A stretch of DNA of 64,000 nucleotides from Paragordius varius (taxonomy: Eukaryota; Animalia; Nematomorpha). The stretch covers positions 3,100,001 to 3,164,000 of the forward strand of contig OZ176058.1 of NCBI GenBank assembly GCA_964247055.1. Reading direction: 5' to 3'. Under the pieces are notes generated by a model. It was not told the origin of the DNA, made no database searches, and worked only from the letters and a program-made list of their open reading frames with translations. Positions 39,701 to 63,375 of this stretch are shown piece after piece. The first letter of the stretch is position 1, and each line of letters starts with the position of its first letter. Made by a program: the position numbers and the translations under genes.

Positions 39701-42700
39701 AAAACCCGTAAAAGATAATTAATTTATCTCCAATACTCCTATTTATTGCAAATTATTAAGGATAATTATTGGTTAGATTACGTCACAGCGAAGCCTTATA
39801 GTTATAGTGCATTTTAAAGAAATTAATCCCATACATGGCTTTTCCAAAAACCATATATATGCATCTTGATCAAAATTCAATCATTAGCAGATTTAATTTA
39901 TCCTGGAATAGCTGTGTCACGTGTATATGTGTTCACACATAGATATATGGTTATCATGAAAGTCTGTTCTTTTTTTCAAATATGGCAGTAATAATTAATG
40001 TTTGAATATCCACAATATATAATTATTTGGATGATATATTGCCCAAAAATGTCTATCTCTGTTTTAATTCAAAACTTGGGGATAAACAACATTGTTTGTT
40101 AGTCCCTTATTGGTAAGTACAAAAAGGCTTTCAGGATTGCTACGCGTGAACACGCAACATATAATAATTGCCCGTGTGAAAAGCATTCTTTAGAAAATTG
40201 AAATGGGACTACTTATGGAATCATAGGAATGCGAGGAATAAAAACATTCTTACCTTCAAACGGTCCCACTAATATAGTAGCTTCTATTATTTTACAATCT
40301 AAAAGTTTTCAACTATGAGTCGTGTGTGCCATTGCGCAAAATCTTGGCTGATTAATATTGCGTAACACATCCACATAGATAGGTAGTTGAATCAGGAGAT
40401 GCAGTTAATTATCCAACCGAATTCTTAAATTCTTCCTATGATCCATCAGGACCACCCCATTTAATGATTCTAAAGGTAGTATTTTCAATAATATCGTTAC
40501 GCAATATCGCAATGACAATAAATAAGGCTCAGGGCCAAACTTTAAACGATTGCGGATTAGATTTATCTACAGATTACTTTTCACACAGGCAATTATTATA
40601 TGTTGCGTGTTCACGCGTAAGTAATCCTAAGAGCCTTTTTGTACTTACAAATAAGGGACTAACAAACAATGTTGTTTATCCCCAAGTTTGAATTAAAACA
40701 GAGATATTATACATTTTATATATTGAAATATGAGTTTGCTTTTTAAACTAATTTATCAACCCTGTTTACGACATATGTTTTTTTATTAACTTTCTCAGAT
40801 CAAATTGTGTAAAATCGAAAAATCTCAAGACATCATATGTATAAAAATGAAACAATATTTTAATAAAATTATACAATACAGTAGCGTATGACATAAAACA
40901 ATATTATTCCATAAAAAGAATTTTTTAAAAAAAACAAAGGGATATTATGGATGTGTATTTACATTTAGGCTTGAATGTTATATGCCATACGCTACTGTTT
41001 ATGTACGTTTGTTTCGGCCAATTGGTGTATACCATAGTCAGTGATAAAAAAAATCAAATTATGTTAATAATAAACAAAATTAATGTTGTGAGATTGGAAA
41101 ATGTTGAATAATTTTCACCATTTGTTGTTTTTATCTATATGCTACTGTGTTTCCGATCACAAATAATCTAAATTGGCCAACATTAATGTGTGCATACTGT
41201 ATCTCTATTTTTAAAATTTTTTGACCCCTGATTTACTATTTACTTTTTTGTCCTAGTTTACATTTTGGGGTAGTTTTATATCCTAAAGCTTAATTTTGTT
41301 AACTAATTACAGGTTTGATATTTTAGTCAAAATCTAATGGTCAAATATTGTCTGTGTTATAAATAAAAATGGCTTTATTTTTAACAATTTTGTGACTTTT
41401 AAAGTTTAAAGAGGAGAGCTAAAAACACGCATCTGAAATTAAAATCAGAAAACTTTAAGTTTTGTAATTTCTTGGTAAAGCTTTTTAAAGTTAAATATAT
41501 ATATTTTTTAACCATAATATACATATATTGGCCTGTGACATTACCGATTTAAAAAAAATTAAAAAAAAAATGGCGGCAAAAAAGTTTGATATGAGGATTT
41601 TTTACAATTTACATTTTTTAAATATTTTTTTCTCACCTAAAAGGTTAAATAAAGCATATTATTATATTCGATTTTATATCTTAAAATCTTTTTAAGATGT
41701 TTTAATTTCAAATCGCTCTCTGATATAAAACTACTCCAAAAGGTAATGAATGAATTCTTAAATTTTATAAATTTATCTTTTGTGTAAAAAAACCAAATGT
41801 AGTTTAATGAAATTGATCAAAGCGCTTCACTGCATGGGAATTGGAAGCTAGAAAATGCAAAAAGTCGACTTCACCATTTTTTGCAAATCAATCGTTTGAG
41901 TTCGGAATATCGGTACAAAGTTATTGGGACCACACCGCAAACCAAGTTTGATTTTATGCTTATTTTTAACAATTATTAATAACCAACAACTCTCTATACA
42001 GTGGATTCAATTAAAGAATATTTGTAGTAAAGAAATTGATATTAGGGGTTAAATGAATATTAATTAAAATAAAAAAATGAATATTAGTGAAAATAAAAAA
42101 ATTAATATTAGGGGTAAAAAAATGAATATAGTCAAAATAAAAAAACATAGGGCTATGGTGCACGAGTAAGCATTACCCCATAAATACCCATTAAATAATA
42201 ATTATTTTTTAATATTAGTGAAAGAAAAAAAAAGGGAATTTATTGAGTATGTATTCTTTCCTTTTATTATAGTAAATAGTAAAAAATAATTATTATTTAA
42301 TAGGTATGGGGTAATGCTTAAACCATGGCCCTTTGTTTTTTGTTTTTTTATTTTCACTAATATACATTTTTTTTACTCCTAATATATACCATTTACAGTT
42401 CAAATTCACCCTTCTTGAACAATTCAAATTCACCCTAAAAATAAATTATGTGTTTTCGAACTAATATAACTAATTATTAATATGAAATATATCTTTATGG
42501 CATAGTTTATTATTTTTTCAGTGTTATTTTAATTTAAAACAAAATTTTTATTTTTTAAAAATATATTAAAATATAGGTAAATTTTGATCTCAAAAAACAT
42601 ATATTTTTATTGAGGGTGAATTTGAATTGTTTAAGGGTGATTTTAATTGTTTAAGGGTGAATATGAATTGTAAATGGTATATAAATTTCTTTACTGCAAA

Positions 42701-45700
42701 TATTCTTTTATTTAATTTACTTAGTCTTATGCGGCCCTCTAAAATTTTTAAAGGTTTCCGAAAATTTAGAAAAAAGCTAATAATTACAACATTTGTAAAA
42801 CTTGGAATTTTTATTATTTCCTTTAATTTGTTTGTTAATAATAATTTATAGAGAATTATATTTATTTATTTTGTTTAAATAATCACACAAATAAACTGTT
42901 TGACAAAGGATATTTTAAGGCTGTTAAATATTGTTTAATTGGACTTTGTATAATCTAGTATAATGAAAGTATTCTTAACAATAAATTTTCATTCATTAAA
43001 TTTTTTATAGACAAAGGATTCAAATTTTTGATTGAAGTTAAACTTTTGGAAATAAATCATGTATTTATCAATATTTTTTTTCGTTAAATGGGTATAAATA
43101 TTTGGTAAAGAATGGAAAAAACAAGAGCTCTCTGGTGTAATTTTTATACTTTTATTGATGAATATGATATTGTTAATACCATAGAACTCTTGTTTTTTCC
43201 ACATTCTTTACCAAATATTTATACCACCCCCCATTTAACGAAAAAAAATAAATTTTTGATAAAATAAATACATGATTGTATTTTAGGAATTTTAAATGTC
43301 ATTACCAGGCCATTTGTTGATACCCTTATTCTAAACTAATGATTTAATATATTGTAATAACATACATTAAATAAAAAACTTTATTTTTTTGAAATCATTT
43401 TTAAGTTAATTACCTACATATTCCAAAAATTGGGAATCCACTAACCTGAAATACGCATAAAGATTCTAACCTTATCACTTAAATAAATTTTTAAAACATT
43501 TTCTTATACGCTTTCCCAATATTTTTACCCTTGAACAAATCAAATTCACCCTAAAATAGTTATGTGTTTTCGGGATAATATAGCTCATTATTGATATGAA
43601 ATATATTTTTTTCGACATATTTTATTATTTTTTCATCATTATGTTAATTTTAAACAGAATTTCATATTTAAAATATATTATAAAAAAAAGTAATCTTAAA
43701 AAACACGTTAGTATCAAGTAATTGATTTTAGGGTAAATTTGAATTGTGTAAGGGTGATTTTGAACTGTAAATGGTATTTCTTATAAGCACAACAAACACT
43801 AATACATAATCTTAAATATTTTTTTTCATATGACAAGGTAGGCTAAAATTACCGTTTTGCCTGTATAATTTATTTTTTACTCTATATACGAATCTATTAT
43901 AAACCGAAAAACGAAATTTATTACATAAATTCTAATCTTACTGTAAAACAGAGCATACTCACATAATAAGTTTTGTCCGTGTAATTTAAATTTGTATATG
44001 AGAATGCCTACAACTAAATAATCGTACGTATTAATACAAAGTTTAAAACGAAATTTATTACATGAACTTAAACTTAATCTTACTGTAAAACAGAGCATAC
44101 TCACATAATAAGTTTTGTCTGTATAATTCCAATATTCAGTGTATATGTTAATCCTTACAACTAAATAATCATACTTATTAATACAAAGTTTAAAACTAAT
44201 CTTTGTCTTAATATACCTTTTAGGGCATACATTGCTGAGATGAGTTTTCACGTCGTTAATAAAGATGACAATCCTATCATGATTAGCGCATCCGAGTATG
44301 GAAAAACTAAAATTGCAGCCTCAAAAGCGTGTGCCCTTATGCTTTTGCGACAATTATTTCATTTGGGTCTGGTTGAATCTTATGATCCGACTCAAAAACT
44401 ACTTGGAACAACTGCTGGGAGTAAAAAAAAGAAATTTGGGAAAAAAAGAGGAAAAGATGGAGGATTTAGTAGAGACACCCCAAAGCGTATTAAACCAGAA
44501 ACAGTATCTAAGTGGATTGTAAGTTTTTTTTAAAATTATTTGAAGTATAAAATCTATAGATACTTTTTTTAAGCAAAAATTTAAAACTTTTATTGTTTAT
44601 AGATAACATATAAAAATTATCTTTGGGATTCTTGTCTTTACACAAAATATTTAATTGTAAGTGTTAGAGTTTTGCCTTGAATGATAAATCATACAAATAT
44701 TTTTATAGTAAATATTTAAGGCGCGGGTAGGGAAAATGATCATTTAAATTTATAATTTCTGTAAAAAATATACAGTAAAAGGTTTTAGAGTGATTTTTTA
44801 GTTTTAGAACTTAAAATAAAGGATTGATTTTTAAATTACATGTTTTATTTATTTTTTTTCTTGCAAATAAAATTTTATTTCGAGATTTGGTTTGATTTTT
44901 CTGTTTTATTAAACATCCAAAGAAACTGAAATTAAATTGTAGCTTGTAATTTTTGCTTTAACTTTTAAATTATAAGGCAATTTTTTACATTTAAAAAAAT
45001 ATATAAGCTTTATAAATAAGACGGATTTTATAACTTTACTTACTCTATATTTTTATATTAAATGACACATTTTTAATTTTTTTTTTGAAAAAACAGATTA
45101 TTAAATTTATATTTTGAATTTTTTAAGATGGACCCCCCTTGCAATGTTAATTTGAATCCTGAAATCAATGTTCAATTTGACGAAGCTTTGAAAATGCTAC
45201 AACTTATACCTTTAGACATTGTAAAAAAATTTATTTTACTAAAATATTTTATTTATATAAATTATTTTTAAAAGATTATATTAATAGATAAATAAAAATT
45301 TGTTTGATTTTTATATTAATTTAATTAATTTCATTACAAATGCGAAAATATGTTATGAAATTTAATTAAAATTGCCAATTGTTTTTGTTTTTTAAATTTT
45401 CAATTATACCATATATTTTTTTATTAGATAATTAAATTGTTAGAATATTGTATCAAAATTTTAGCATTTTTTATAAAATTATTTTTTTGAGCCATTTTAT
45501 AACAATGTTTATAAAATTTAACTGTACATTTTTTTCGTTTTAAATCAGGGATTTCGGGCCGCATTCTAACTATAAATAAAATTTAAATAAAATTTGCTAG
45601 ATTTCAAACATAAAAATGTAAAATGCAAACGCAATATAGCAATTTTTTCTAGCTTATTGTCAATAGGATATATTAATTTACAAAAATTGTTCATGAATTT

Positions 45701-48700
45701 TAGATTTCAAATAAAAAAAATTACATTTTTTGCAAAATATGGATTTCAATTTTTTTTATCTGCCCTTGATATAAAAATTTCCGAAAGCTCTGTTTTGAAC
45801 GCCTTTGTTGTAACCTATTAATTTGTATCATAACATTTTCAATTATTTTTATAAAAAAATGTTAAATTTTTATCATTTGTTAGCATTAATTTTGGCTATT
45901 GTGTTCATATATATTTCAAAATAATTATATTTGCAAAATATTTTTGACTTTTTATTTTTCGTATAATATTAGTGATACTTTAATCACTTATGAAAAAATA
46001 TTAAAAAAAATTTATAATTTTTTACACAGTAAATGCTGCCATTTTAAAATCTATAGTTATTGTTGGTTTTAAAAATACCGTTTGATTAGTTATTTTTTAC
46101 CTTAAAAGAGTTTATTATAGTAACATTGTCAATTATTAAAAAAATATTAAAAATTTTCACTTCTCACAACAAATAAATTTTATTGTTTCAATTTTTCATA
46201 TTTTATAATCCTTATTTTGCAAAAAACCGAATTTTTAAATTTTAAATTCTATATAATTTTAGAAAAACCGAATTTTTAATTTTTGAATTACTATATTATA
46301 CATTTTAGATACCTAAAGAGCCAAGTCTCAATGTTAAAAGTTATTCACAAATACTGGAAAAAATTGATTTTAGTATTCCGTCGGATATAAACTTATTAAA
46401 ACCTGTTCCACGTAATTATATATTTATCTAAATATGATATTTTATCAAATTTAAATTAAATTGATAATAATAAAATATTCATTTATAAACATTATATATA
46501 CTATTTACTGTTCAAATTAACCCTTGAATATATCAATTTCACCCTTGAACACAATTTTAAATTCACCTTAAATATTTTAAAATTTCTATATTTACAGTTT
46601 TACAGTAAAACTTGAAATTATACGGACAAAACATAAAAATATAAAAGCAATTTTTTTCTAAAAGACAACTAAACTTTTTAAATCTTTTATTATAATATAA
46701 CTCATTATTTTATACAACAAAGTATAATATAGAGATGTATATTGGTAACACAACAAAATTATATTATTGTGAATAAATAATTTATATGAGAAAAATTTAA
46801 ATTTAAAAAAGTATGGTTGTCTTTTAGATAAAAAAATTGTCTTTATATTTTTACGTTAATCGTTTCACAAAAAAATTTATAAATACTGTTCTTTTAATTT
46901 TTTATTTATCATTTTAGATATTTTTTACCCTAACTGGCAACTTCATATAATTTAGATCGTAATCAATTAAAAAGATTAAAAACATAGAAAGAAATTCGTT
47001 TATTGTTTTTATAATTAGTAATTTTATTGCATTATTTATTTAATAGTTTTATGGACACCACCTATGAAGGATTGGAACACATGGGCTTGTAAAGAAATTT
47101 TGCCTCCTATTGTAATTTTTATCTTTTTTAAAAAAAATCTGAATTTTATACTTTTTTTAAACTCTAAACTTATAATAAATCTTACAGAAAATATTTTTTA
47201 ATTGACCTAGTACATATGATTTAGTTATTTATACAATTTTATTTTTTTGCAGGAATTAAATATAATATATTTTAGTTTTAGATGCATTATTTTAAAATAA
47301 TTATACTTGGGATTTTTGTTAGAACAAAACACCTGAAGGTTTTTAATTTTTTAAAATTATCGGAATTAAATGATAAACATAAAAATTATAAACTATGCCA
47401 AAAAATTTTATTAATTAATTTTTAAACCATAAAATATATTTTTAAGATGAAAATTTTGGTTTGGGGTTAAATTTTCCTATATAAATTTTTTTGCTGCTTT
47501 AGAATTTGGAAGAATATAATGATCACCTTTTAAAAGATTGGAATGCAAAAATTGACGAAAATTCAGAATTTACCAAGGTTTTAGATTTATTTTAGGAATT
47601 TTCGTATTATATATATGTAAAAATAAATCTAAAAGATTAATATTTTTTATATAAATTAAACTTTTTAAGTGTTTTTTTGGAAGTCAGAAAAATTATAATT
47701 ATAAATAATGAATTTATTACTAATTAACATCTTTATTGGTAATTAGCTATCCTAAAATATTGGTTTAAAAAAATGGATATAAAAATATGTTTTTGTCTAT
47801 TTTTATAAAACATTTTTGTGTTTTACATATTTTTTTATATAATCCCCCTAAAATAAAACTCTACATTTTTTATGGCAGGTTAAGAAATAAAAATATAAAT
47901 TTATAAACACTATTAATGTTAATGAAACATATATAAAATTGTACATAAATCGTTTAGTCTTTAAAAAAATATAAATGAAAAATGTATAATTTTTACGTAT
48001 TTGTGAAATCTTTCCAAATTAATACTGTATTGAAATTATACGATAAAACGTTAAATATAACATATATATTTTTTCAAAAGGCAATTATACTTTTTAAACC
48101 TTTTTTTTTCCTTATAAATTATATCGGTTTTTACCACATGTTTTTTTAGTTTCATATCTCATTAAATATTAATTTATACTTAATACTTTAAATTTTAGTT
48201 TATATTTCAATTTTTTTTGCGTTTGACAAAGATCTAGTAATAATCGAAAATTCACAATAAATTCATATAATTTTAGCTGAATTATAATTGCAATAAAATA
48301 AAAATATTGTTATCTTTATATTTTTTTTACGTTTTGTCCGTTTAATTTTAGTTCTTACTGTAGTGTCTACATGTTATGTTTAATGATAGATTTTTGAAGA
48401 ACGTAAAAATATGCCGATATACGCGCATAAAGATGAGATTTTAACCGCAATTACAAATCATGCAGTCGTTTTTGTCAAAGGACCCCCCAAAATCGGAAAA
48501 AGCACACAAGTTTAAATCATTAAATATTAACACTTTTTATATATAATAAAAGCGATTTTATATTTTATAGCTTAAACATCATACATAATTTTGAAATTGA
48601 AATTTTTTTATTTATAAGTTTTGAAAAATTTTTTTATACTTTTAAGCGTATATATATTTATTATTCTCTTCAAGGTTAGTTTATATAATAAGCACTTTCT

Positions 48701-51700
48701 TACTTGCTGATATAATTTGGAAAAGAAACTAATTTTGATATAGAAAACGCTTTATATTTTTGAGTGATAGTTATTTAAACTATTGAGCAATTCAACTGTA
48801 CATAATTATTTTTAGGTTGGTTTTTGAATATGCCTTTTAAAATTTCCTTTGAGGGCATATATCAATAATACTTGCAAAATTTTGCTCAGAGGTTTTAATT
48901 AGTTTCTAACATTCCCTTTTATTATGTTTACCATTAAAATGTTCTAGACCAGGGGTGTTCAACACGCTTTTTTTAGTCTACAAAAATGCTCTTAAAAATG
49001 TTAAAAAAATAAAAAATTGAATTTTTTCAATTAAAAATTTTACGATTATTTAAATAATATTATTATCCAAAAATAATAATAGAATTTTTAAATTGAAACA
49101 AAATTTTTTGATTGAACACCCCTTACTCTAGACCAAATAAACAATAAATTACATTTTAAATGTAGATATATATTAATTGCACCTAAACAAAATTTTGCAT
49201 TTTTACGATCTCAATTCCCTAATACAGATATTCCGATATATCATAATCTCAAAAGCGGTTTTTACCTTTAATAGGATTTTTTCATTATATTATCAAACAG
49301 ACCATTTTCTCTTTAAAAAAATGTATTTTTATTATAATCATATAATTAATTTTTAATACAAAAATTATATTGTTTTTAATATGGTAAAAATTGAAAACCA
49401 CACAAACTAAATGTAATTATTTTTTACTAATTTTTTTCTCAAAGATACCTCAATACATTATTGAGCAACCATTTAATGGTGATTTGATATTTGAAATCTT
49501 TTTGATTTATAAACTACCAAAAAAGTTTTATATGAAAAGTTTGCTCAAGGAAATCCATCTTCTTAATACGTATATATTTGCATTTCATAGCTTATAAAAC
49601 GATTTTTCTTTTGTAAAATATACTTCTTATTATATTTGCATTAAATTATATATAATATATACAGATACCTCAATACATTATTGAACAAGGAATTAGCCAA
49701 GGGCGTGGTTCCCAAAGCTGTGTTTGCGTAGTTAGCGGACAAAGTGTGCCTCCACTTTTGGCGCGAGATTTAACCGCTAAAGTTTTAGCGGATAGAATCC
49801 AGAGCGAACAACAGAATTCTCAAAAGACCGCTGTCATTGCCGGTTTCCAAAACTTTTGGGGTGAAACTGATATCGTCGCCACGAATGAGGTGGCGGATAA
49901 TTCAGTAAGAATTGTTTAAAACTATCGAAAGAAAAAAATTTTTTTTTATTTTAATTACATATAGTTTATACCATTTGCAAGAGTGTTCTTGAACACTTCT
50001 AGTTGGTCCTTGAACAATTATTGGTCCTTTAACAGTTCAAGTTGGTCCTTGAACAATTCAAGTTGGTCCTTAAAATTATAAATTTTGATTTAACCATAAT
50101 TTTTGCATTTGTTTTTTTATTTTATCATTTATAACCTAATTTTCTTGATTTATTAAAAACAATACAAAAAAGTCAAAGGACCAACTTGAAGTGTTCAAGG
50201 ATTAACTTGAAATGTTCAAGGACACTCTTGAAGTGCAAATGGTATATATAAATGGTACAAAAACGCTTGTATTTGATGATTTTTTATAAATTAAAGATAT
50301 TTTTAATATTTTAAACTATTATTAAACATTTTTTTGCCGTTTATATTAACTATATTTTTTGATTCATGTTTTGCCAACAAAATATTTATATTAAATTCTG
50401 ATTTCGTTTTAATATAACTCATAGTTTAAAATTGCAAAATATAAAGTAGAGATGTAAATTGGTAATATAACCAATTATATATTTTACAATTGGTATTTAA
50501 ATGATTTAAATAGGAAAAAGCAAGTTTTAAAAAATGTACAGTGGTTTTTTGAAAAATATTACGTTTTGTCCGTATAATTTCGATTTATATATATATTTAT
50601 ATATATTTTATAGGTATTGGCCACTGATAGAGGAATCTTACCAAGACCATTTGGAAGCGCTTTATACTGCAATATGGGTATGTTGTTTAAATTTTTTTGA
50701 AAACATTTTTTTGGATATTTTTAATATAAAAAAAATTGATTACTAGGATAGTTTTTTTAGATTTATATCAAAAAAGTGTATTTAAAGCTAATTTTTTTAA
50801 CTTTATAGAAAAATATTATATATTTTACTGGAAAAAATAATTATTAATTTAATTTTGTTTTATTAAAGGGTTAGTAAGTAAATTTGTATGTTACTTGTAA
50901 TATTAAGGTCATTATGGAGTCCCACAGGGTTTATTTGATAAAATTTGGATTAATTTGCAAATTTAATGTAAAGATAATAATTTTTGCCAAATAATTTTTT
51001 TTATATTTAAATTTTAAAGACGTAAAGTAAAAACTAAAGTACAAAATTATTTTTAAATCTTAATTTTTTTTTAAATTTAACAAATTTAAAATCTATAATT
51101 ATATCAAATTTATATCTCTAATTCATACTTTGTATTTTAAAATAATTCTTTTATTCAGATAACATGTTTAATAAAGTATTAATTGTTTTTATTCTTAAAT
51201 ATTTACGGTAAATTATTTAATTGTACTTAATTCATAAGTAAAACTATATTAAATGTACACAATATCAAAACTATTTACAATATTATCCTGGCAATAGATT
51301 TTTTTAATTATAAATAAATTTCAATTTTTAATGCAATTATTTTTTGATTGTAGAATATTTTTTACAACGCATACTGCGGTATGGCCTTAAAGGAATTAGC
51401 CATCTCATCATTGATGAAGTTTACGAAAGAGATTCTTTGGTAACATCACTTTTTTAGTTTTTTGTTTTGAACTCAATTTTATAAAAATTAAAATTTCAAT
51501 TTTATTTGGTTATTTTAGTAAACTTTTTTTACTTAAATAAAAATTAGAAATTATTCTGTTATTATAATTATGGATGGTTTTGTTTTTAATATACCATTTA
51601 CAATTCAAATTCACCCTTGAACAATTTAAATACCCTTAAACAATTAAATTTACCCTAAAAATTAATTATGTGTTTTCGGGCGCTAATCTAACTCATCATT

Positions 51701-54700
51701 AATATGAAATATATCTTTATGGCATAGTTTATTATTTTGTCAGTAATTTTTTATAAACAAAATTTCATCTTTTAAAAATATAAAAATTTTTAATTTTAAA
51801 AACATTTAATTTATTTAAGGGTGAATTTGAAGCGTAAATGGTATATTAATTTATATTGAAAAGTTGTTTTGTTCCTATAAAAAAATGACTTCTTTTTTTT
51901 ACTTTTTGTTTTAAATATTTTATAATATTATTTTTAAATTTCGTGTTAATTAAAAAAATTAAAATAATTCAATTTTATACATTTTACGTTTTTGTGTCTG
52001 TATGATATCTGATTTTTTACAATTTTTATACTAAGAATTATTTTAAATAATATACCTTTTTTCCATAATTTTTTTTATAATTTTATTCTTACTCTAAAGC
52101 TTTGTTTATATAATTTTGCTGCTTTTTAGACCGAATTTACATATTTTTTATAGTTTTCCAATTTAAAATTTTTTAATTTTTTTTGACATTGTTAGACCGA
52201 ATTTATATTGATGCTTTTACGTGATTGCGTTCAAGTTTATAATCCACACTTTAAACTCATTATTCTGAGTTCTGATTCTTGCATATCCGACATTGAAGAT
52301 TATTTTGTTAATCAAGACAGAAAAATTATTGATATTTTCTCAAAAAAAGATCACTCTATTAATTCAATTGTTTCTCTTGATGGTACAAGCGAAGATATTG
52401 ATGAAGATATAAATGAAAAAACGGATTTTATTGGTTTAAAAAGTAAGTCTTACTTAAAAAACGAATTTTTAAAGGTGTTTTGGATATAATATTATTTTTA
52501 ATTATGAAAAAACTGAAACCATTGATTTTAAAAGTAAGTTTTACTTAAAAAACGAATTATAAAGGTATTTTAGATATAATATTATTTTTAATTATGAAAA
52601 AACTGATTCCATTGATATAAAAACTAAGTTTTACTTAAAAAACGAATTTTTAAAGGTGTTTTTTAGATTTAATATTTTAACTAATTTCAAGTATTTATAT
52701 AGAGTAAAAACTGAAATTACACGGACAAAAAGTAAAAATATAAAGACAGATATTATTTTATTTCAAAAGACAATTATACTTTTTTAAACATTAATTTTTC
52801 TCATACAAATTATAAAATTACGATTGTAATATATATATATATATATATATACATATATATCAATTCCACACTTTTAATGAGTTAAATTAAAAAAAGCAAG
52901 ATTTAAAAAGTATGGGGTTATCTTTTAGAAAAATATTTGTCTTTATATCTGCACATTTTGTCCGTATAATCACAGTTTTTATCGTTAATTTTAATATTTT
53001 TTCAAAAGATTTTTTTATAATAATCGATCGCCCAAGCGGATCCGAAATATATAATATTATTTTTAATTTTTTATATTATTCGCATATTAGTCAAAATAAA
53101 ATATTCATATATTTTATTAAAATGATTATATTGTCATAAAGTATATACTATAATTTTATACTTTTTATCTTGCTTAGTTTTTTAAAAAAAAAGTTTTAAA
53201 CATTTTTTTCTTTTAGAATAACTAACTAATAAACAAAATATTTTGAAAACTATTTTATTCCTTTATTTTTTATAATCTATATGCTTACAATTGTGAAATG
53301 GATAATAAATTACTTTTAATGTTTTGTAAACATATTAAGGTTAAAAAGTATGGTTTTCTATATCAAGTAAAAATATATGTACCATTAATCAAAATTATTC
53401 ACCCACGAACAATTTAATTTTACCCTAAAATTGTAGTTTTTAAAAATCAAAAAATTAACATGTATTTTAGATATTTTTATTGAAATGAAACTTTGTTTTA
53501 AATTAACTTAATATCGAGAAAAAAAATGAATAATATCTGCCACAAATATATTTTACATTAATAATGAGTTTATTAGCTCGACAAAAAATAACTTATATAT
53601 TTTAGGGTAAATGAATTTGAAAAGTATTTTATAGTTGAAAAACACATAACTCATATTTTAGGGTGACTGAATTTGAACAGTATTTAATAGTTAATTTGAG
53701 GTCTGGAGTTTATAGTATAATAAATTGTCATAATTTAACTTATTTTTCTAAAGAATTATTTTTTATTAATAATAGAAACAACCGGGGAAACATTATTTTT
53801 GGATGATTGTATAGAGTTAACGCATTTCGATTACAATGGAATTGTTGGAACCGCTTACGGTAGAATGCGAAGACGCAAAAAAGCCAAACTTAGAAGGAAT
53901 TTACCTCCTAGTTTACATAATTTGAATTATACTGGTATTTATTTTTGATATTTAGATTTTAAATTCAGAAAATTTATTAAAATTTAACAAAAATTATTAT
54001 TGAATGAAATGAAACTTAAAACTAAATACAGTCATGTATCCTTTATTATATCAAAAATTTAGGTATAATAATTTCAGAAATTATATAGTAACAATCAGTT
54101 TTTTACAAATCAATAATTAAAATTGTAAATTTTCCAATCAAATGCAACAACATACACATTCTTAAATTGATTCATATAGCCTTAAAAAATCATTTTCTAA
54201 AGCAGCTATTTTAAAGAAATAAAAATGTTAATATTTCTTTGATAACTTTTTTAAAAAAACGACCCCATTTCTATGCTCTATAGTACAAACATTTTTTTTT
54301 TTTAGGTTTTCATATCTCATTCAAAATTATTGGTTAAATTGATTTCTCATTTAAAATACAATCATGTATCCTTTATTTTATCAAAAATTTATTTTTATTT
54401 TTATTTTTCGTTAAATGGGCCTATAAATATTTGGTAAAGAATGGAAAAAAACAAGAGCTCTATATAGTAATTCTTTTAATTTTATTAATGAATATGATAT
54501 GGTTAATACCATAGAGCTCTTGTTTTTTTCCATTCTTTACTAGATATTTATACTCCCATTTAACGAAAAAAATATATTTTAAATAAAATAAAGGATACAT
54601 GACTTTAATTTAAATGAGAAAACTTAATTAATAATTTTAAATGAGAAATAAAAACTAAAAAAAACATATTTGCTTTTATAAAGCATAAAAATGGGGTGGT

Positions 54701-57700
54701 TTTTAAAAAAAGTTATCAAAGAATTTGTCAAAAATTTTATCCGCACATGTTTCTTTAAAATAGCTGCTTTAGAAAATAATTTTTTATAATGCAATATAAA
54801 TCAATTTAAGATTAAATGTGTATGTTGTTGCATTCGATTGAAGCATTTACAATGTTAATATATAGAATTGTAATAAACTGATTTTTACTATATATAATAT
54901 TCTGAAATTATTTTACCTAAATTTTTGATAAAATAAAGGATACATGACTGTAATTTAAATGAGAAATGAAACTTGACTAATATGAAAAATGAAAAAAAAT
55001 GTTTGTACTATATATGAAAATTTGTTTGTTTTTTAAAAAAGTTATCAAAGAAACTTTTAACTTTTTATATTTCTTTTTAAGAGCTGCTCTAGAAAATAAT
55101 TTTTTATAATGCAATATGAATCAATATAAGATTGAATGTGTGTGTTGTTGCATTTGATTGAAAAATTTACAAAATTAAATATAATTTTAGTATTGTAAAA
55201 AACTGATTTTTTACCCTATATAATATTTTGAAATTATTATATCTAATTATTTTCAGTGGATCCTGATGAAACTAAAGCTCCCTTCTGTGATTTTTCTATT
55301 GTTGGAGAACAAGAACTAGAAAATCAAAAACGAGGACATTCAAAGATTTATAAACCTTTGACACGTTACGTTTGTTCTCAAATGTCGCTAAAGAATGACA
55401 TTTCTTTCGAATTGATTTATGTAAGAACAAACCTTTTTATAATAAAATCATTGGGTAAAAAAAAGTTTGTGGTTTTTTTTGAAAAAAAACCGCTTTTAGA
55501 AACTAAAAACTTGAACATTATAATAATTTTATAATTTCCTGATTATTTTTAATTATACATATATATACCATTTATAGTCAAATTCATTCTTGACCAATTT
55601 GAATTCACCCTAAAAAACAATTATCTGTTTTCGAATTAATATAAAATATATTTTTATGGCATAGTTTATTATCTTGTCGGTATTATTTTAATTTTAAACA
55701 AAATTTTATCTTTTAAAAATATATTGAAATAAAGGTAATTTATAATTATAAATAACACTTAATTTTTTTAGGGTGAATTGAATTATAAATAGTATATATA
55801 TTGTTTACAAGAAATTTATTAGATTTCAAATATAAAACTGTAAAATGCAAATTCAATATAGCAATTTTTTCTGGTTCTTAACAAAATTGATAGACTTATA
55901 TAAAATACCTATTTAGGAAATATTACTTTTATTTAGATTTTGTGAGCATTTTTTATAAAATATGAATTTTCAAATTTTTCGCGGGCCGCACATAAGCTGC
56001 TTGTTGGTGACTCTTGATTTAAGTAAAAACCTTAACTTTTTAATACGGTTCTTTTTTATACAACGTTTATTCATTTTTAAAATATTTTTTATAACATAAT
56101 ATTATTTATAGAGTGTTTAATAATGGTGATTCATTAAAAACGTAAAGCTTGTATTGTTTTTTATACTTCTCTATATATAATTCTTTATTTAAATAACTTA
56201 AAAAAATTGAATTACGGACAAAACCTAAAAATATAAAGACAATAATCTTATCTAAAAGACAACCATACTTTCTAAAACCTTAATTTTTCCCATATAAGCT
56301 ATTTATTTACAATTGATTGTGTTAGTAATATATATCACTATTTTACAATTTTCCGTTTAAAACAATGAGTTATTTTGAAAAAAATCAAGATATAAAAAGT
56401 AATGGTTTTCGTTTAGAAAATATATTTGTCTTTATATTTTACGTTTTGTTAGTATAATTTTAGTTTTTACTGTAATCAGTATAAAATCTTAAGCAAAAAT
56501 TGGGTATTTTTATCAAAATATATTTTTAGATAAAAAATATGAAAAGTGGGGCGGGAAATTTTAAATGGTCAACTAATGGTGAAATTAAAATTTGATTTAT
56601 TTTTATTTTTAAAATGTCCTACTTAAAATATGTAAAAAAATATTTTTAAATTTTTTTATTCATTTAATTGAATTCCGTGACTTTTATACTTTTTTAAATT
56701 TTTGCCAAATATTTTTCCTGTAATAGGTAATAGGCTTTACCAATATATTTATAATACGGTAAAAATCATTAAAATTATACAAACAAAACGTAAAAAAACT
56801 AAAAGACTACTTTTTCCATAAGTGTGATATACCCTTAATTTAGCTGAAATTTAAAAAAATATTTATTAACTTTTGTCCTTACATTTAAATTTTTTGATAA
56901 ATTTAAAAAGAAATTATACGGACAAAACTTTATAATTAAAAGAATAAAATTTTTTTCTAAAAGCCAACCATAATATATAAAAATTAAAGTTTTTAATGAT
57001 ATAATTTATTGTTTCAAATTGTAAAGTATGAATATTAATGTACCATTTGCTATTCAAAAGTGTCCTTGATCACTTTAAGTAGTTGGTCATTTAACTCTTA
57101 TGTTTTCTTTTTATATTTTAACTCGTAATTAAAAAGTAAATAAGTTTTATGGGTTACTATTAACAATGTTTCATTGGAAACATTTAAAAGTTAATAATTT
57201 TGCTAAATTGGGAAAAAATTAATAAACAAAAAAGTTGTTTTTGAATATGAATAAATAATTATTAAAAAGATAAAATTAGGTTTTTAAAAATTAAAAAAAA
57301 TGCAAAAATTTATGGTTAAATCAAAATTTATAATATTTTAAGCACCAACTTGAAATCAAGGCATTCTTAAAATGTTCAAAGACAAACTTGAAATGCTAAT
57401 GGTATAACACAAACCTAAAATAAAATATGGTCTTTTGGAAAAAAAATATTTGCCTTTATATTTTTACCTTTTGTGTCTGTAACTTAATTTATTTTACAAT
57501 TTTTAGAGCATTATAGATTATATAGTGAGTAGCAAGGAATATGGGACCATACTTATATTTTTACCTAATGTCACTTATATTCAGTCATTAGAAAAATATT
57601 TGTTGGATATAATTGGTAGAATGTCAAGTAAATATCTATATCTTTCATTTTGCTTTTTTTAGACAGAGAATTTTATATATAATTCTCAAGAAATTAGTAA

Positions 57701-60700
57701 AAAAAAACTCAATATTCCACAAAATTTTTAACATCATAAATAGAAATACAGTCGAACTTTTTTTGTGCGAAAAAAATCGCGACAAAGTTTATTATAACTG
57801 TTTTTTGACTAATTCACATTCATTAGATTTAATTTTAAAATATTTTAAATATAAATTTACAAGTATTCAATTATAATATAATTTGGACAGAAAATGCGTG
57901 TTTTTTTTAAAAAAGTTTTGACTGTATTTATGCTGTTAAAATTTTAGGTGTTTTCACATTTTTTAAGTTAACTTATATTTTTATGCCAAAAAAGCAAATT
58001 GATTGATTATGTTTATACTTTTCATTCCAAAATCCAAATCCCAAGTTTTTTTAACAAAAAAAGTTTTTTTTTAAAAAAAATGATTTTAATTTTAACCTAC
58101 GATTATTAATTACTTTTTAAATTTTAATTATATACTATTTATGAGATCGGTTTTTAACAATTTACATGTAATAAAAAATTTATTTATACTTTTAATTCCG
58201 GAATCCAAATCCCAAATTTTTCGAAAACATAAACACGTTTTTTCTAAAAAATGATTTTAATTTAGGATTATTAATTTACTTTTCATATTATAATTATATC
58301 CTAAATATTTATAATATCGGTTTTTAACGATTTGAAAAAATATATTTATACTTGTAATTTCAAAATCCATATCCCAGAGTGTTTTAAAACATAAATTTTT
58401 TTTAAAAAAATGATTTTAATTTTAACCTATTACGATTATTAAATACTTTTCATATTATAAATATATCCTAAATATTTATGATATCGGTTTTTAACATAAG
58501 TGTTAAAAATTATTTATACTTGTAATTTCAGAATCCATATCCCAGTTTTTTAACATAAAACTTATTTATAAAAAAATGATTTTAATTTACGATTAATTAT
58601 TACTTTATATATTATAAATATATCCTAAGTATTTATGATATCGGTTTTTAACTCTAGGAATATAATAAAAAATCTATTTATAATTTTCATTCCAGAATCC
58701 ATATTCAAATTTTACTTTCTTTTAATTCATTTATACGCTATTTAATAACCTAAGATTTAATTAATTTAAAAAAATATCTCAACAAATTTTATTTCCATAA
58801 TTAATAACTTTAACCTTAAAATATTAACAAAATGTTGTTTAAATATCTTTCTTTAACAAAAATCATGAAATATATTTGAAGAAAATAGTAGCAATAATGT
58901 TATTGAAAGCGAAAATGATGGAAATAATGAAGATAGCAAAATCACTACGGAATCAATCAATAATGAGAATGGAAATGCAAATAGAAAAAAAAGAAATTTT
59001 ACTTTTTATAAACTTCATGAATGGACCCCTTTTGCTGATTGGGAAAAAATGTCATCTACTAATCAAAACGACGACACTCCGGATAAATCACAAAAGGTAT
59101 TTTAAATGCAGATTTTCCAATCCGATTTACAGTAAAACTTTTTATTTTTATTGAGATAAGTCCTACCTCTTTATTTTTCAAATTACTTATTCTGATTTTA
59201 TGTTTTAATAAAAATGTACCTTTTAAGCGCTTTTTTGAAATTATACTTTTAATAAATGCAATAATTAATTTAAAAATTTAAGAATAAGTAATTTACATGC
59301 TAAAAATATGTATTTCTTAAATTTTTAACCAGTCAAAAATAGGTGTTGAGTTTTAGTTTGAAAAAAAACTCATTTTTAATTAAAAAAAGTGCTTATTTAT
59401 TTTATTTTTTACGTTTGACAAAAATCTAAATATTATAATAAATTTATATAATTTTAGTTGAATTATAATTGCATATTTATAATGGAATTAATCAACATTT
59501 TTTCCACATATTTATTATAGATTATCTTAGCAACAAGTATTGGTGAAAGATTAACATTGTGTGACGACAATCCATTGTACATTATAAACACTTGTAAGGT
59601 GGAAAAGGGCGGCATTTATGTGACAAAAAGCGACAATACAACAATCAAAAACAACAAACTCATTGTCATAACTTCAAAATCTAATGTGGATTTAAGGTCG
59701 ACCTTATTGAACTCGTCAAGCAAAGGAGGTGGCTCTTGTTTTAATCTTATATCTCGGGAATGTTATGAAAGGTATTGGTATTTTTTTATGGTTTCAGTTC
59801 CCTGAAAAACTTAAAAATACGGATGAAATAACATAAAGAAATATCTTTTTTTTATCACTTACTCATGGTTTTAAAGTGTTAAATATGAGATTGTTAACAA
59901 AATACTAGATACATTTTGCAATCGTAATTAAATTAATAATTTAATCAAGGAATGATATATATATCTTTTACCTTAAAAAACCTAATTATATATACAGAAA
60001 AATTGAATTTATACGGGGAAAATGTAAAAATATAAGCATTTTTTTTAAAAAAGACAATGATACTTTTTTAATCCTTAATTTATCCTATAAAAAAAATTTA
60101 CATTTTTATATTATACTTTGTAGGTTACAACAATGAGTTATATTATATTTAAAAAATCAAGATCATAGAAGTATGTTTGACTTTTATGTTAAAAAAAATA
60201 TTTGTCTTTATATTTTCACGTTTTGTCCCCGTATAATTTCAAAATTTACTGTAATTTATAGATTACCGAATTATACAATTTATCCGACCAACAACCTTCC
60301 ACGCATACTCCTTATAGCTCTAATTTTAGCTCAAACTCAAAACGCAAAAATTGAATTGCAATATCAGTAAGTTTATATATATACATAGTTGCATGAAATT
60401 TTAGTTTTTTTCGTATAAAATTATACGAATTAAAATTGATTGTTCGATAGAGGCAAAATAAATTTTAGATTAATAATATTCATACATTTATGAAAACGGT
60501 TTTTATGCCTATAAATTTGTATACGGTATATAATTTCCTCATGGCATTAAAAAGGGGAAAAAATAACTTTAGATCAATAATATTCATACATTTATGCTAT
60601 TGATAGGAAATTACTTAGACCCGATTTATACCAACTCAAAACGAGCTTAAGTTTTCTCTTACAAATGGGAGCTTTTGAGTTTATTGGTCTTAATAATCTG

Positions 60701-62237
60701 AATGTGAATACCACTTCCATAGATCAATTATTTGCAAATAACATCAAAGTAAGTGCGTTAGGTCGAATCCTGGCTTATTTGCCAGACATGGGCGATCTTA
60801 AAATGGGCAAAATGATTATTGCATCCTCTATTTTTGGGTATATATATAGTAATTTTGTTTAAAAACTTTAATATATTATATATGCAATTATAATTTAGCT
60901 AAAATATAATTAAAATTATATTAGGATTAAATGAAGTTAAAACTAAAAAAACACTTTTTTGGTCTTTTAAGATAACTATATACATGAATTTTTATTGTAA
61001 TGACATAACATATTTTTATATATATATATATATATAACATAAATTTAGTTCAAAAACTTAAAATTATATTAGAGAAAAAACGAAGTAAAAACTAAAAGAA
61101 CACTTTTTTGGTCTTACAATAATCAACCATATACATAATTTTGATTGCAATGACATAACATATTTTTTGGGATATATATATATATATATATATATAGATT
61201 ATTTTAGTTTAAACACATGGAAACTACATTAGAGATAAAACAAAGTAAAAACTTAAAGAACCCTTTTTTGATCTTTTTAGATAACTATATACATAAATTT
61301 GTTATAATGACATGATATATTTTTTTGGTTTCAGATCATTATATTTTTTAATTTTGATTGATTAACTATATCAAATATTCCTATATAAATATATATATAT
61401 ATATATTTATAAAGTCTGCAAATTTTGCATTGTTTCAAAATAAGTTGATAAAATAAAATATTGAGACGCTGTAAAAATTTAGAATCGTTTTTTAGATTTA
61501 CCTTTTTCCTGTTTCAATTTTATTATAAAGTCTTTATTGGTATTTTCTTAATTTTCAAGAATGTATAAAAAGTAAATTAAATGATGTCGTTATTTGTCAA
61601 ATTAAGTTTAATTTTTTAAAAAAAACAAAAAAAATCTTCTGCTAAAAAAATTATACATAAAATTTCAATAAATTGTTTTTAGTTTTACGTTTTATCCTTG
61701 GTATATTTCCAATTTTTATTGTAATATAATATTAAATTTTTGTTTTTAATGAATTTTATCATAATTTTAATTTATATATGTATTTTATTATTTATCCTTG
61801 GTATAATAACTTTTATTATATATGCAATTATAATTCAGATTAAATTATATAAATTTATTATGATATTTTGATTACTAAAAGTAATCATTGTCAAACGTAA
61901 AAAATAAAATTAAAATATAAACTAATTTTTTTTACTTCAGCATAAACAATATCCAATAGTAAATTTTATTATGTTATAGAATACTAAATTTTTATTGATA
62001 AAAATTTCAAATTTTATAAGTATTTTACAATTATAAACTTTTTTTTATTTAATTTAGCGTTAGCCATTTAATGACAACCCTTGTTAGCTTACACGTGAAT
62101 CCTGACATTTTTGACAATGCCATCGTGATTAGAAAAACACTTTTGCGACACCTTAAAACTATTTGTGTCACCAATAATCGAAACAGTGATTTATTGGCTA
62201 TATTGATTTACAACAATCAATATATTTTATCTCTAGG
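36770..62237 (+). CDS. DHX9: DHX9/Maleless (RNA helicase A)-family protein, 3'-partial, with degenerate helicase motifs (candidate pseudo-helicase); >=1096 aa, >=22 exons
   Basis: Exons 36770-36877, 36906-37065, 37097-37173, 41803-41945, 44224-44518, 45128-45220, 46309-46411, 47047-47111, 47503-47577, 48390-48509, 49665-49904, 50614-50677, 51354-51439, 52196-52442, 53776-53934, 55257-55420, 57507-57615, 58882-59096, 59521-59771, 60262-60366, 60607-60837, 62058-62237; all phases compatible, no internal stop. dsRBD1 MADIKNYLYTWCCKR...SSKKEAQTLAAKNFVKYL; linker SASLHGNWKLENAKSRL; dsRBD2 ...ACALMLLRQLFHLGLVESY; MTAD-like WTPPMKDWNTW; ILPRPFGS; FLDDCIELTHF; HA2 SALGRILAYLP and NRNSDLLAIL. These are DHX9-type rather than DHX36/YTHDC2-type. 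Orthologue versus paralogue is unresolved. Confidence 0.9.
38000..39430. repeat. Degenerate GC-richer satellite: alternating ~130-165-bp A/B subunits forming ~300-bp dimers (DHX9-like intron 3)
   Basis: Anchor AAGGCAAAAATT recurs at ~38035, 38198, 38353, 38485, 38651, 38815, 38950, 39197, 39348. A subunits carry CGCCACCATATCG...GAAAACCTATCAGGCCAT; B subunits carry AATTAGGCTC...CCCTAAAAAATGCG...TTTTAGTTTTGAG. Confidence 0.75.
40383..40691 (+). mobile_element. Helitron Rep/Hel Pif1-like helicase C-terminal relic, internally deleted
   Basis: Open frame VVESGDAVNYPTEFLNSSYDPSGPPHLMILKV...IISLRN|IAMTINKAQGQTL...FSHRQLLYVACSRV...TNNVVYPQV matches Helitron helicase motifs (DAVNYPTEFLNSL..SGLPPH, AMTINKSQGQ, FSHGQLYVACSRV). 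The segment between LRN and AMTINK is missing. Confidence 0.85.
41240..41761. mobile_element. MITE family D
   Basis: TTTTGGGGTAGTTTTATATCC ... GATATAAAACTACTCCAAAAGG; reverse-orientation relative of 10735-11245. Confidence 0.55.
42111..42379. mobile_element. Palindromic MITE, PIF/Harbinger-like
   Basis: TTA|GGGGTAAAAAAATG ... CATTTTTTTTACTCC|TAA; internal arms TAAGCATTACCCCATA / TATGGGGTAATGCTTA also pair. Confidence 0.55.
42389..42677. mobile_element. MITE family A
   Basis: tata|CCATTTACAGTTCAAATTCACCCT ... GTAAATGG|tata. Confidence 0.8.
43056..43277. mobile_element. Short hairpin copy of the foldback element at 54029-54950
   Basis: AATCATGTAT...CGTTAAATGG...GGTAAAGAATGGAAAAAACAAGAG / CTCTTGTTTTTTCC...CTTTACC...CCATTTAACG...ATACATGATT; same central hairpin as 54360-54605. 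Confidence 0.75.
43909..44195. repeat. Tandem duplication, two ~140-bp units, just upstream of DHX9-like exon 5
   Basis: aaaacgaaatttattaca...cttactgtaaaacagagcatactcacataataagttttgtc...acaactaaataatc...attaatacaaagttt occurs twice. Confidence 0.85.
48950..49125. mobile_element. hAT (Buster/Charlie-type) MITE
   Basis: CAGGGGTGTTCAACAC ... TTGAACACCCCTTA flanked by the near-identical 8-mers TTCTAGAC and CTCTAGAC (nnnTAnnn target). The same left end recurs at ~21392. Confidence 0.75.
49971..50242. mobile_element. MITE family A'
   Basis: tata|CCATTTGCAAGAGTG ... (TTGGTCCTTGAACA) repeats ... CTCTTGAAGTGCAAATGG|tata. Confidence 0.8.
51594..51841. mobile_element. MITE family A
   Basis: tata|CCATTTACAATTCAAATTCACCCTTG ... 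GTAAATGG|tata. Confidence 0.8.
52411..52680 (+). repeat. Three ~90-bp tandem units spanning the end of DHX9-like exon 14 and its donor site
   Basis: atgaaaaaac(g/t)g...att(g/t)...aaaa(g/c)taagt(c/t)ttacttaaaaaacgaatt...aaaggt...atataatattatttttaatt starts at 52413, 52504 and 52594. Confidence 0.85.
54029..54950. mobile_element. Foldback-type element, ~920-bp near-palindrome with TA|CAGT termini
   Basis: TA|CAGTCATGTATCCTTTATT ... AATAAAGGATACATGACTG|TA. Each arm holds a ~330-bp unit plus a repeat of the terminal motif; a further partial unit runs 54951-55245. Confidence 0.8.
56200..56472. mobile_element. MITE family B
   Basis: TTGAATTACGGACAAAACC ... TTTTAGTTTTTACTG|TA. Confidence 0.75.
58012..58710. 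repeat. Tandem repeat, ~165-bp unit, 4+ copies (DHX9-like intron 17)
   Basis: tttatactt...aatcca(a/t)atccc...aaaaaatgattttaattt...cgattatt...atcggtttttaac recurs at ~58012, 58183, 58345, 58513, 58678. Confidence 0.85.
59995..60251. mobile_element. MITE family B ending 10 nt before the exon 20 acceptor
   Basis: TA|CAGAAAAATTGAATTTATACGG ... CCGTATAATTTCAAAATTTACTG|TA. Confidence 0.75.
60915..61325. repeat. Tandem repeat, ~155-bp unit x3, with embedded (TA)n
   Basis: aagtaaaaact...aacacttttttggtctt...aac(t/c)atatacat...aatgacataacatattttt recurs three times; the unit resembles a decayed family B TIR. Confidence 0.75.
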
Positions 62238-62264: not shown

Positions 62265-62628
62265 CCATTTACAATTCAAATTCACCCTTGAACAATTCGA
62301 ATTCACCCTTGAACAATTGAAATTCACCCTTGAACAATTATTCACCCTAAAACAATTTAAATTTACCCTTAAACAATTCAAATTCACCCTTGAACAATAT
62401 AAGTTCACCTTAAAAATAAATTATGTGTTTTCGGGCAGCTAATTTAATTTAACATTAATATAAAATATATTCTTATAGCATAATTTATTATTTTTTCAGT
62501 ATTATTTTGATTTTAAAAAAAATTCATTTCATAAAATATAAAAAATATCGGTAATTGCTAATTTTAAAGATCACATAATTTATTTTAGGGTGAATTTGAA
62601 TTGTTCAAGGCTCAATTTGAACTGTAAA
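62265..62628. mobile_element. MITE family A with ~6 21-bp repeats on the left arm
   Basis: CCATTTACAATTCAAATTCACCCTTG(AACAATT..AATTCACCCTTG)n; right end degenerate; explains the spurious ORF 62254-62442. Confidence 0.75.
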
Positions 62629-63375
62629 TCGTGTAATTCCAATTATTTATAAGCCATTTTTTTCAATCAAAATTAATTATCTTTTTTCAAAAAATGTTTT
62701 TTTATCTATGAGGTTTAGTAATAATTTAAAACTATTAACCATGAATTGTAAGTTTGATTGAAAAAAAAATTAAAAATTATTTGAACTGATTTCCTTTTAT
62801 ATAAAAAAACTTGTCTAATTTTCTATGCCTTTTATGGTAATTAATTAGAATTAGCCTGACTATCTTAATTATTTTTTATTGTGAATAAAAAAACGCTTTT
62901 ATATGAAATTTGTCCAAAAAATTATTTAGTGTTATATCTTTTTACAGTATAGAATTGATTTAAGCGCTTGATTTATTTGTTTTTTGGACCCGTATTTTTT
63001 TAAATATTAACCATTTACAATTCAAATTCACCCTAAAATAAATTATGAAATTCGATACAACTCATGATTAAAATTAAATAAATTTTAATGGCAAAGTTTA
63101 TTATTTTTACAGTATCTTAATTACATACAAAATTTCTTTTTTAAAAATATAAAAAAATATAGGTAATATTTAATCAAAAACACATAATTTATTTTAGGGG
63201 GAATTTGAATCGTTTGAAGGTGAATTTGAATTGTTTAAGGGGGAATTTGAACTGCAGTGTCATAAAAATTGAAAATTTAAAGCGACAAAAGGTAAAAACA
63301 TAAAGACCAATATTTGTTACAAAAATCCGTAATACTTTTTTAATTATTTCATTGTTTTAAATTAGAAAATATGTA

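Follow-up and report, generated by a model that had tools for sequence, protein, structure and literature searches.

DHX9/Maleless is treated as an obligate NTP-driven enzyme, its ATPase-dead mutants serve as standard loss-of-function controls, and human DHX9 is a drug target through its ATPase. Can such a gene be kept by selection once the arginine fingers of its ATPase site have gone? The question is raised by a 64,000-nucleotide window of the hairworm Paragordius varius (C9:3100001-3164000; host genome 110.6 Mb, 44 contigs, ~22% guanine plus cytosine, GC), in which positions 59521-59771 on the forward strand form exon 21 of a DHX9/Maleless-type gene of ~31 exons, hereafter the C9 copy. The initial annotation, whose translation of this exon we reproduced exactly, had read its motif VI as lost and taken the loss as evidence of catalytic death. 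A genome search located a second DHX9-type gene in the same genome, the C5 copy (C5 ~9,034,500-9,024,000, minus strand). From the combined evidence, the C9 copy is probably an intact and selected DHX9 paralogue that is predicted to be ATPase-dead.

Exon 21 encodes the part of the second RecA domain (RecA2) that runs from motif V to just beyond motif VI. At codons 59692-59715 it reads L-R-S-T-L-L-N-S in place of the family Q-R-x-G-R-A-G-R; the Q, G, R, A, G, and R are all replaced and the first R alone is kept. The hidden Markov model (HMM) and MAFFT alignments described below place the substituted Q, G, R, G, and R at the same coordinates as the initial annotation did. Whatever the alignment, the 13 residues from the retained motif VI Arg to CFNL contain no Arg, a single Lys, and a two-residue insertion. 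An exhaustive representative search with a two-exon profile returned 127 library relatives (best E 7e-13), 118 of which carry a canonical motif VI, so the C9 sequence lies far outside the variation of the family.

Four independent alignments agree on the anchors that fix this register (IILATSIGE, YIINTCKVEK, SKSN, and CFNLISRECYER), and the earlier claim that the flanks of motif VI align held in each of them. Database searches were run exon by exon, and the joined protein was used for local alignment, HMM, tree, and counts. A phmmer search against the PDB placed exon residues 1-84 on DHX9 561-636, although the exon alone scores weakly (E = 0.86), while tblastn with canonical Lingula and other segments found no real match in 74 kb other than exon 21 (E 5.5e-6). 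The same anchors came out of a MAFFT alignment that included nine full-length relatives. Pfam Helicase_C did not detect exon 21 alone at E ≤ 10, and the C5 counterpart exon was likewise without a match; because single exons are too short and too divergent for Pfam, we trained an HMM specific to this family on the RecA2 region of 72 canonical members. This model aligns exon 21 end to end, with high posterior values at SKSNVDLR and CFNLISR and moderate ones (3-8) within the loop. The profile check proposed at the outset thus yields the register from our own HMM and nothing from Pfam Helicase_C.

Motif VI is not the only element altered. Motif I, GxTGxGK[ST]T in canonical members and GPTGCGKTT in the DHX9 of the hairworm Gordionus sp., reads GLPGIGKTT in C5 and GPPKIGKST in C9. 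Motif Ia (TQPRR; TEPRR in Gordionus) is absent from both Paragordius copies, the region being expanded in C9; motif II is DEIH in canonical members and Gordionus and DEVY in both copies; and motif III changes from SAT to SGS in Gordionus and SSD in both copies. For motif VI the series runs from QRxGRAGR through QRMDSAGR in Gordionus to M-R-Y-S-L-A-S-H in C5 and L-R-S-T-L-L-N-S in C9, the first Arg being retained in C5, C9, and all relatives. Set against what active DEAH/RHA helicases carry, the C9 copy therefore departs at motif VI, at the DExH of motif II (where Asp-Glu is kept and His becomes Tyr), and at motifs Ia and III, while its Walker A still conforms to GxxxxGK[ST]. In an alignment of 34 canonical sequences, 79 columns show invariance of 90% or more; of these residues 66 persist in Gordionus, 47 in C5, and 41 in C9, with most of the losses common to C5 and C9. 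The RecA2 profile scores fall in the same order (233, 154, and 79 bits, the last for the locally joined C9 RecA2).

The loss of motif VI is thus not peculiar to the C9 copy: it is common to C5 and stands half-way in Gordionus. Besides DEVY, SSD, the lost TQPRR, and a motif VI without fingers, C5 and C9 have 14 intron positions exactly in common, among them both introns that border exon 21, and their helicase cores are 49% identical. A retrocopy origin of C9 was considered and rejected on these common intron positions. The C5 copy differs in being compact (~10 kb versus >36 kb) and in retaining RPGFCFHL after motif VI and TNIGE in motif V. A maximum-likelihood tree, in which the Gordionus, C9, and C5 rows are skewed in composition, gives (Gordionus,(C9,C5)) with 100% support at both nodes in the Shimodaira-Hasegawa-like approximate likelihood ratio test, and sets C9 within a 15-row arthropod, nematode, and hairworm group at 98% support. 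The shared derived residues and the 14 shared introns indicate the same topology independently of that tree. A long common stem measures 1.3, and the terminal branch of C9, the longest in the tree, is ~3-fold longer than that of C5 (1.14 versus 0.40).

Read together, these comparisons suggest that the ATPase site decayed in steps within the hairworm lineage, for the most part ahead of the duplication, and that C9 is the faster-evolving duplicate. The first step would be the loss of the first Gly-Arg of motif VI, as in Gordionus; by the time of the ancestor of C5 and C9, SAT, TQPRR, and the DExH His would be gone, as would the Gln and both arginine fingers of motif VI; and the C9 copy would have diverged further after duplication. 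On this view exon 21 would be a constitutive exon in the more rapidly evolving member of a DHX9/Maleless pair.

What such a protein could still do depends on the role of the missing residues. In DEAH/RHA structures, motif VI is located at the beta and gamma phosphates; its Gln is needed for hydrolysis, and a conserved Arg touches the gamma phosphate (PMC5473145). Because that Gln is required and that Arg contacts the gamma phosphate, a loss of ATP hydrolysis is predicted for the C9 protein, a prediction in keeping with the other changes in this gene: DEIH to DEVY, SAT to SSD, and the disappearance of TQPRR. The view that motif VI loss points to catalytic death is, on this footing, a reasonable one. 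The losses fall on residues for hydrolysis and coupling (motif VI Gln and arginines, DExH His, SAT) and for RNA tracking (TQPRR, part of motif V). Retained are the Walker A Lys, the Walker B Asp-Glu, the hydrophobic cores of both RecA domains, a putative pair of domains that bind double-stranded RNA (dsRBDs), and, by homology, the HA2/OB and C-terminal parts. Since the Walker A sequence GPPKIGKS and the Asp-Glu of Walker B are both preserved, hydrolysis and coupling are likely lost but nucleotide binding is not necessarily so, and the protein may still hold nucleotide. Most likely it would work as a dsRNA-binding, protein-recruiting scaffold that neither turns over ATP nor translocates on RNA. 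Conservation relative to C5, highest in the dsRBD and C-terminal blocks (61-85%) and among the lowest in the motif V-VI exon (42-47%), fits this scaffold role.

Several features could suit an unprocessed pseudogene, a decaying duplicate whose motif VI was ruined by neutral drift: C9 has the longest branch in the tree and the lowest profile score, and its locus is swollen to >36 kb, the introns holding repeats and a transposon-like fragment. We consider this very unlikely. No stop or frameshift interrupts the ~31 exons (0 stops in 1373 codons of the model frame versus 91 and 145 in the other two frames), although the introns of the locus carry 7.9 stops per 100 codons; all modelled introns are GT-AG, and GC content is 34% in C9 coding sequence versus 21% in introns. 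By Nei-Gojobori proportions, nonsynonymous differences between C9 and C5 (pN) stay well under synonymous ones (pS), both over the whole gene (0.32 versus 0.74, with the synonymous distance dS saturated) and in exon 21 alone (0.33 versus 0.67). Where C5 still has a family-invariant residue, C9 retains it in 38 of 46 cases (83%), versus 44% C9-C5 identity at other columns (Fisher p 3e-7). These figures argue for purifying selection on the fold that continued after the duplication. Moreover, the motif VI loss is older than the duplication and is common to the compact C5 copy.

A canonical motif VI might instead be concealed by an assembly error or a frameshift, or be carried on a mutually exclusive exon; an alternative exon was a possibility raised in the initial annotation. 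Exon duplication does occur in this gene, the start of exon 29 being present in tandem at 70198-70281 and 70398-70511. For motif VI, however, a six-frame pattern search of 74 kb of the locus found no coding piece with QRxGRxGR, [QH]RxGR, or GRxGR, and tblastn over the same 74 kb found no second copy of exon 21; a hidden frameshifted motif or mutually exclusive exon is ruled out at the DNA level. The same loss at the independent C5 locus speaks against an artefact, and, since exon 21 is 251 nucleotides long, skipping it would shift the frame. We regard this explanation as extremely improbable. A further alternative keeps the enzyme alive: C9 could still hydrolyze ATP through noncanonical residues, for example the first Arg that is still present, the Lys in the loop, or an Arg that a partner provides in trans. 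Its Walker A GxxxxGKS and Walker B Asp-Glu are intact, and the first motif VI Arg persists in both copies and all relatives. Yet C9 has lost the hydrolysis Gln together with both finger arginines, other residues stand in place of the DExH His, SAT, and TQPRR, and the loss of a single such element abolishes or cripples the DEAH enzymes that have been studied (PMC5473145, and mutagenesis of superfamily 2, SF2, in general), so that continued ATPase activity is unlikely.

Several points nonetheless weigh against an intact, selected, and ATPase-dead paralogue. Loss of hydrolysis is a reasonable deduction read from sequence, and a loop Lys or a partner-supplied residue could in principle substitute for the missing fingers. 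Expression of the gene and the exon 20-21-22 junctions are predicted from genomic DNA. The aligner avoids stops by construction, which makes the clean frame a weaker measure of selection than the others. The 127 profile matches include no C9 orthologue from any other species, and Gordionus provides their only hairworm protein; because of this and the saturated dS, the selection figures apply to the C9-C5 pair rather than to the C9 branch alone. (A homologue search with five-residue words from exon 21 gave no candidate with enough shared words, a result that says little.) The gene model, finally, includes doubtful micro-exons in weakly conserved linkers (38014-38030, 40527-40601, 44505-44518, and 45288-45351), and the 3' limit of exon 16 and the C-terminus of this homology-guided model are uncertain.

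If the preferred explanation of a selected, catalytically dead C9 copy holds, does the genome encode a working DHX9 elsewhere? A canonical DHX9 was not found in a genome search, where the Lingula motif V-VI segment matched best at C5 (5e-20) and then only other DExH genes, and the dsRBD1 and dsRBD2 parts of Gordionus DHX9 matched at the C5 and C9 loci only. QRxGRAGR is intact in four further DExH/DEAH genes of this genome, and a genome-wide, AT-driven loss of Arg/Gly motifs was rejected on that account. It is possible, though we would not call it probable, that this hairworm lineage is without any ATPase-competent DHX9, both copies being motor-dead and perhaps nucleotide-binding as the outcome of the stepwise decay visible in Gordionus. 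Were that so, the core organismal role of DHX9 in an animal would be possible without unwinding, and the C9 duplicate would be free to specialize as a second dsRNA-binding scaffold.

The C9 gene extends from an ATG at 36770 to ~72.9 kb, 9 kb beyond the end of the window. Its structure was modelled with our own protein-to-genome spliced aligner, the Gordionus protein guiding the C5 model and the C5 model guiding that of C9. Homology supports the helicase-core exons 12-24 well. Exon 21 has phase 0 at its start and phase 2 at its end and is bordered by ...tattatag/ATT on the acceptor side and AAG/gtattggt on the donor side. At 20 bits (E 0.0011), under the 23-bit cut-off, exon 2 aligns to the C-terminal half of Pfam dsrm, only half of the domain being on the exon; single HA2/OB exons had no Pfam match when scanned individually, and exons 22-30, the HA2/OB module, are 47-85% identical to C5 per block.

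Features of the C9 gene, all in window coordinates
Feature	Position	Strand	Content	Basis
Exons 1-2	36770-37065 (36770-36877, 36906-37065)	+	Start codon and putative dsRBD1	Homology; exon 2 Pfam dsrm
Exons 5 and 6	41803-44420 (41803-41945, 44224-44420)	+	dsRBD2	Candidate domain; 54-61% identity to C5 copy and Gordionus
Exon 12	48390-48509	+	Motif I G-P-P-K-I-G-K-S-T at 48480-48506; GxxxxGK[ST] intact, family TG replaced	Homology
Exon 13	49665-49904	+	Motif Ia TQPRR lost; insert before motif Ib	Homology
Exon 15	51354-51439	+	Motif II D-E-V-Y for D-E-I-H at 51413-51424; same change in C5	Homology
Exon 16	52196-52306	+	Motif III S-S-D for S-A-T at 52268-52276; 3' limit provisional	Homology
Exon 19	57507-57622	+	RecA2 start, motif IV region (ILIFLP)	Homology, HMM
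Exon 20	58985-59096	+	RecA2 between motifs IV and V; family LHSQ..F reads LHEW	Homology, HMM
Exon 21	59521-59771	+	RecA2 motif V to just past motif VI	Homology model, HMM, C5 intron positions
Motif V	59533-59547	+	T-S-I-G-E (family T-N-I-A-E), partly kept	MAFFT, HMM
Motif VI remnant	59692-59715	+	L-R-S-T-L-L-N-S (family Q-R-x-G-R-A-G-R), then S-S-K-G-G-G-S including the two-residue insertion	MAFFT, HMM
Exon 22	60262-60366	+	Start of winged-helix/HA2; completes split Arg codon of ...YER	Homology
Exon 23	60607-60837	+	Part of HA2 (...LGRILAYLP...GKMII)	Homology
Exon 24	62058-62237	+	Last exon within the window	Homology
Exons 25-31	64214-72839 (window-equivalent)	+		Homology; stretch L005, downstream of the window

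Several further features of the locus were observed. Intron 1 is only 28 nucleotides long (36878-36905), and its C5 counterpart, at the same phase-0 position, measures 22 (c5rc 5591-5612). The tandem start of exon 29 (RIRIKMDSHLLAKLILLRGAFDKMIN[I/V]V) lies at L005:6198-6281 and L005:6398-6511 in the downstream stretch, window-equivalent 70198-70281 and 70398-70511, and only the second continues as an exon. In a GC-richer part of the gene (38-41 kb), a plus-strand frame at 40383-40688 has a C-terminal helicase signature of superfamily 1 (Pfam Herpes_Helicase E 3e-6, UvrD_C_2 E 1e-3) and resembles a fragment of a Pif1/Helitron-type transposon lying within an intron of the DHX9-like gene; the aligner took up part of this frame as a doubtful micro-exon. 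A 21-nucleotide satellite (unit ACAATTCAAATTCACCCTTGA) forms arrays on both strands, in introns, at 49988-50071, 62271-62415, 63198-63251, and L005 ~8839-8938, and reads in frame as FKFTLEQ-type repeats. The modelled last exon runs into such an array, and the true C-terminus is therefore uncertain. Tandem repeats also lie directly 3' of exons 16 and 23, at 52413-52676 (90 nucleotides, 2.9 copies) and 60867-61324 (160 nucleotides, 3 copies).

How does the C9 copy compare with known helicases? With DHX9, that is RNA helicase A or Drosophila Maleless, of the DEAH/RHA group of SF2, it has in common the order putative dsRBD1, putative dsRBD2, RecA1, RecA2, HA2/OB, and C-terminal tail; it is colinear with these proteins, as with C5 and Gordionus DHX9, over its full length and is placed within the animal DHX9 clade. 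Its core, ~30% identical to canonical members, sets it apart through an altered motif V and the replacement of motifs Ia, II (His), III, and VI. The nearest outside relative, the Gordionus sp. ATP-dependent RNA helicase A-like protein (XP_065312800/XP_065312799), has an N-terminus very similar to that of C9. XP_065312800 shares with C9 the missing first Gly-Arg of motif VI and a replaced SAT but, unlike C9, retains motif I in canonical form along with TEPRR, DEIH, and the Gln and final Gly-Arg of motif VI, and it may be a weakened, perhaps still active enzyme. Independent partial decay is seen in the planthopper Maleless-like paralogue of Laodelphax striatellus (RZF33238; DEIQ, SGN, and QRLAIAGR), which sits on a long branch unrelated to C9 in the tree and, unlike C9, still has the Gln and the final Gly-Arg of motif VI. 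Among the papers of the library searched, none joins hairworms or Nematomorpha with DHX9. A natural animal lineage would here have kept, duplicated, and selected a DHX9 gene after loss of its hydrolysis residues, with an intermediate persisting in a related genus, and the canonical, Gordionus, C5, and C9 proteins would form a ready separation-of-function series for DHX9 roles that need the motor versus those that need RNA binding or scaffolding alone.

The closest functional parallels may be pseudo-helicases. Drosophila Bgcn, derived from YTHDC2, and yeast Utp25 are reported to have a helicase fold without working ATPase motifs and to act as RNA- or protein-binding adaptors (PMC5832417, PMC5703642, PMC9539457). 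Their parent families differ from that of the C9 copy. Bgcn coexists in flies with other live helicases of related function, whereas no live DHX9 was found beside C9 in the hairworm genome. The C9 copy thus appears to be a DHX9/Maleless protein by descent that, judged from its predicted residues, falls short of a catalytic helicase by mechanism and is best grouped with pseudo-helicases such as Bgcn and Utp25.

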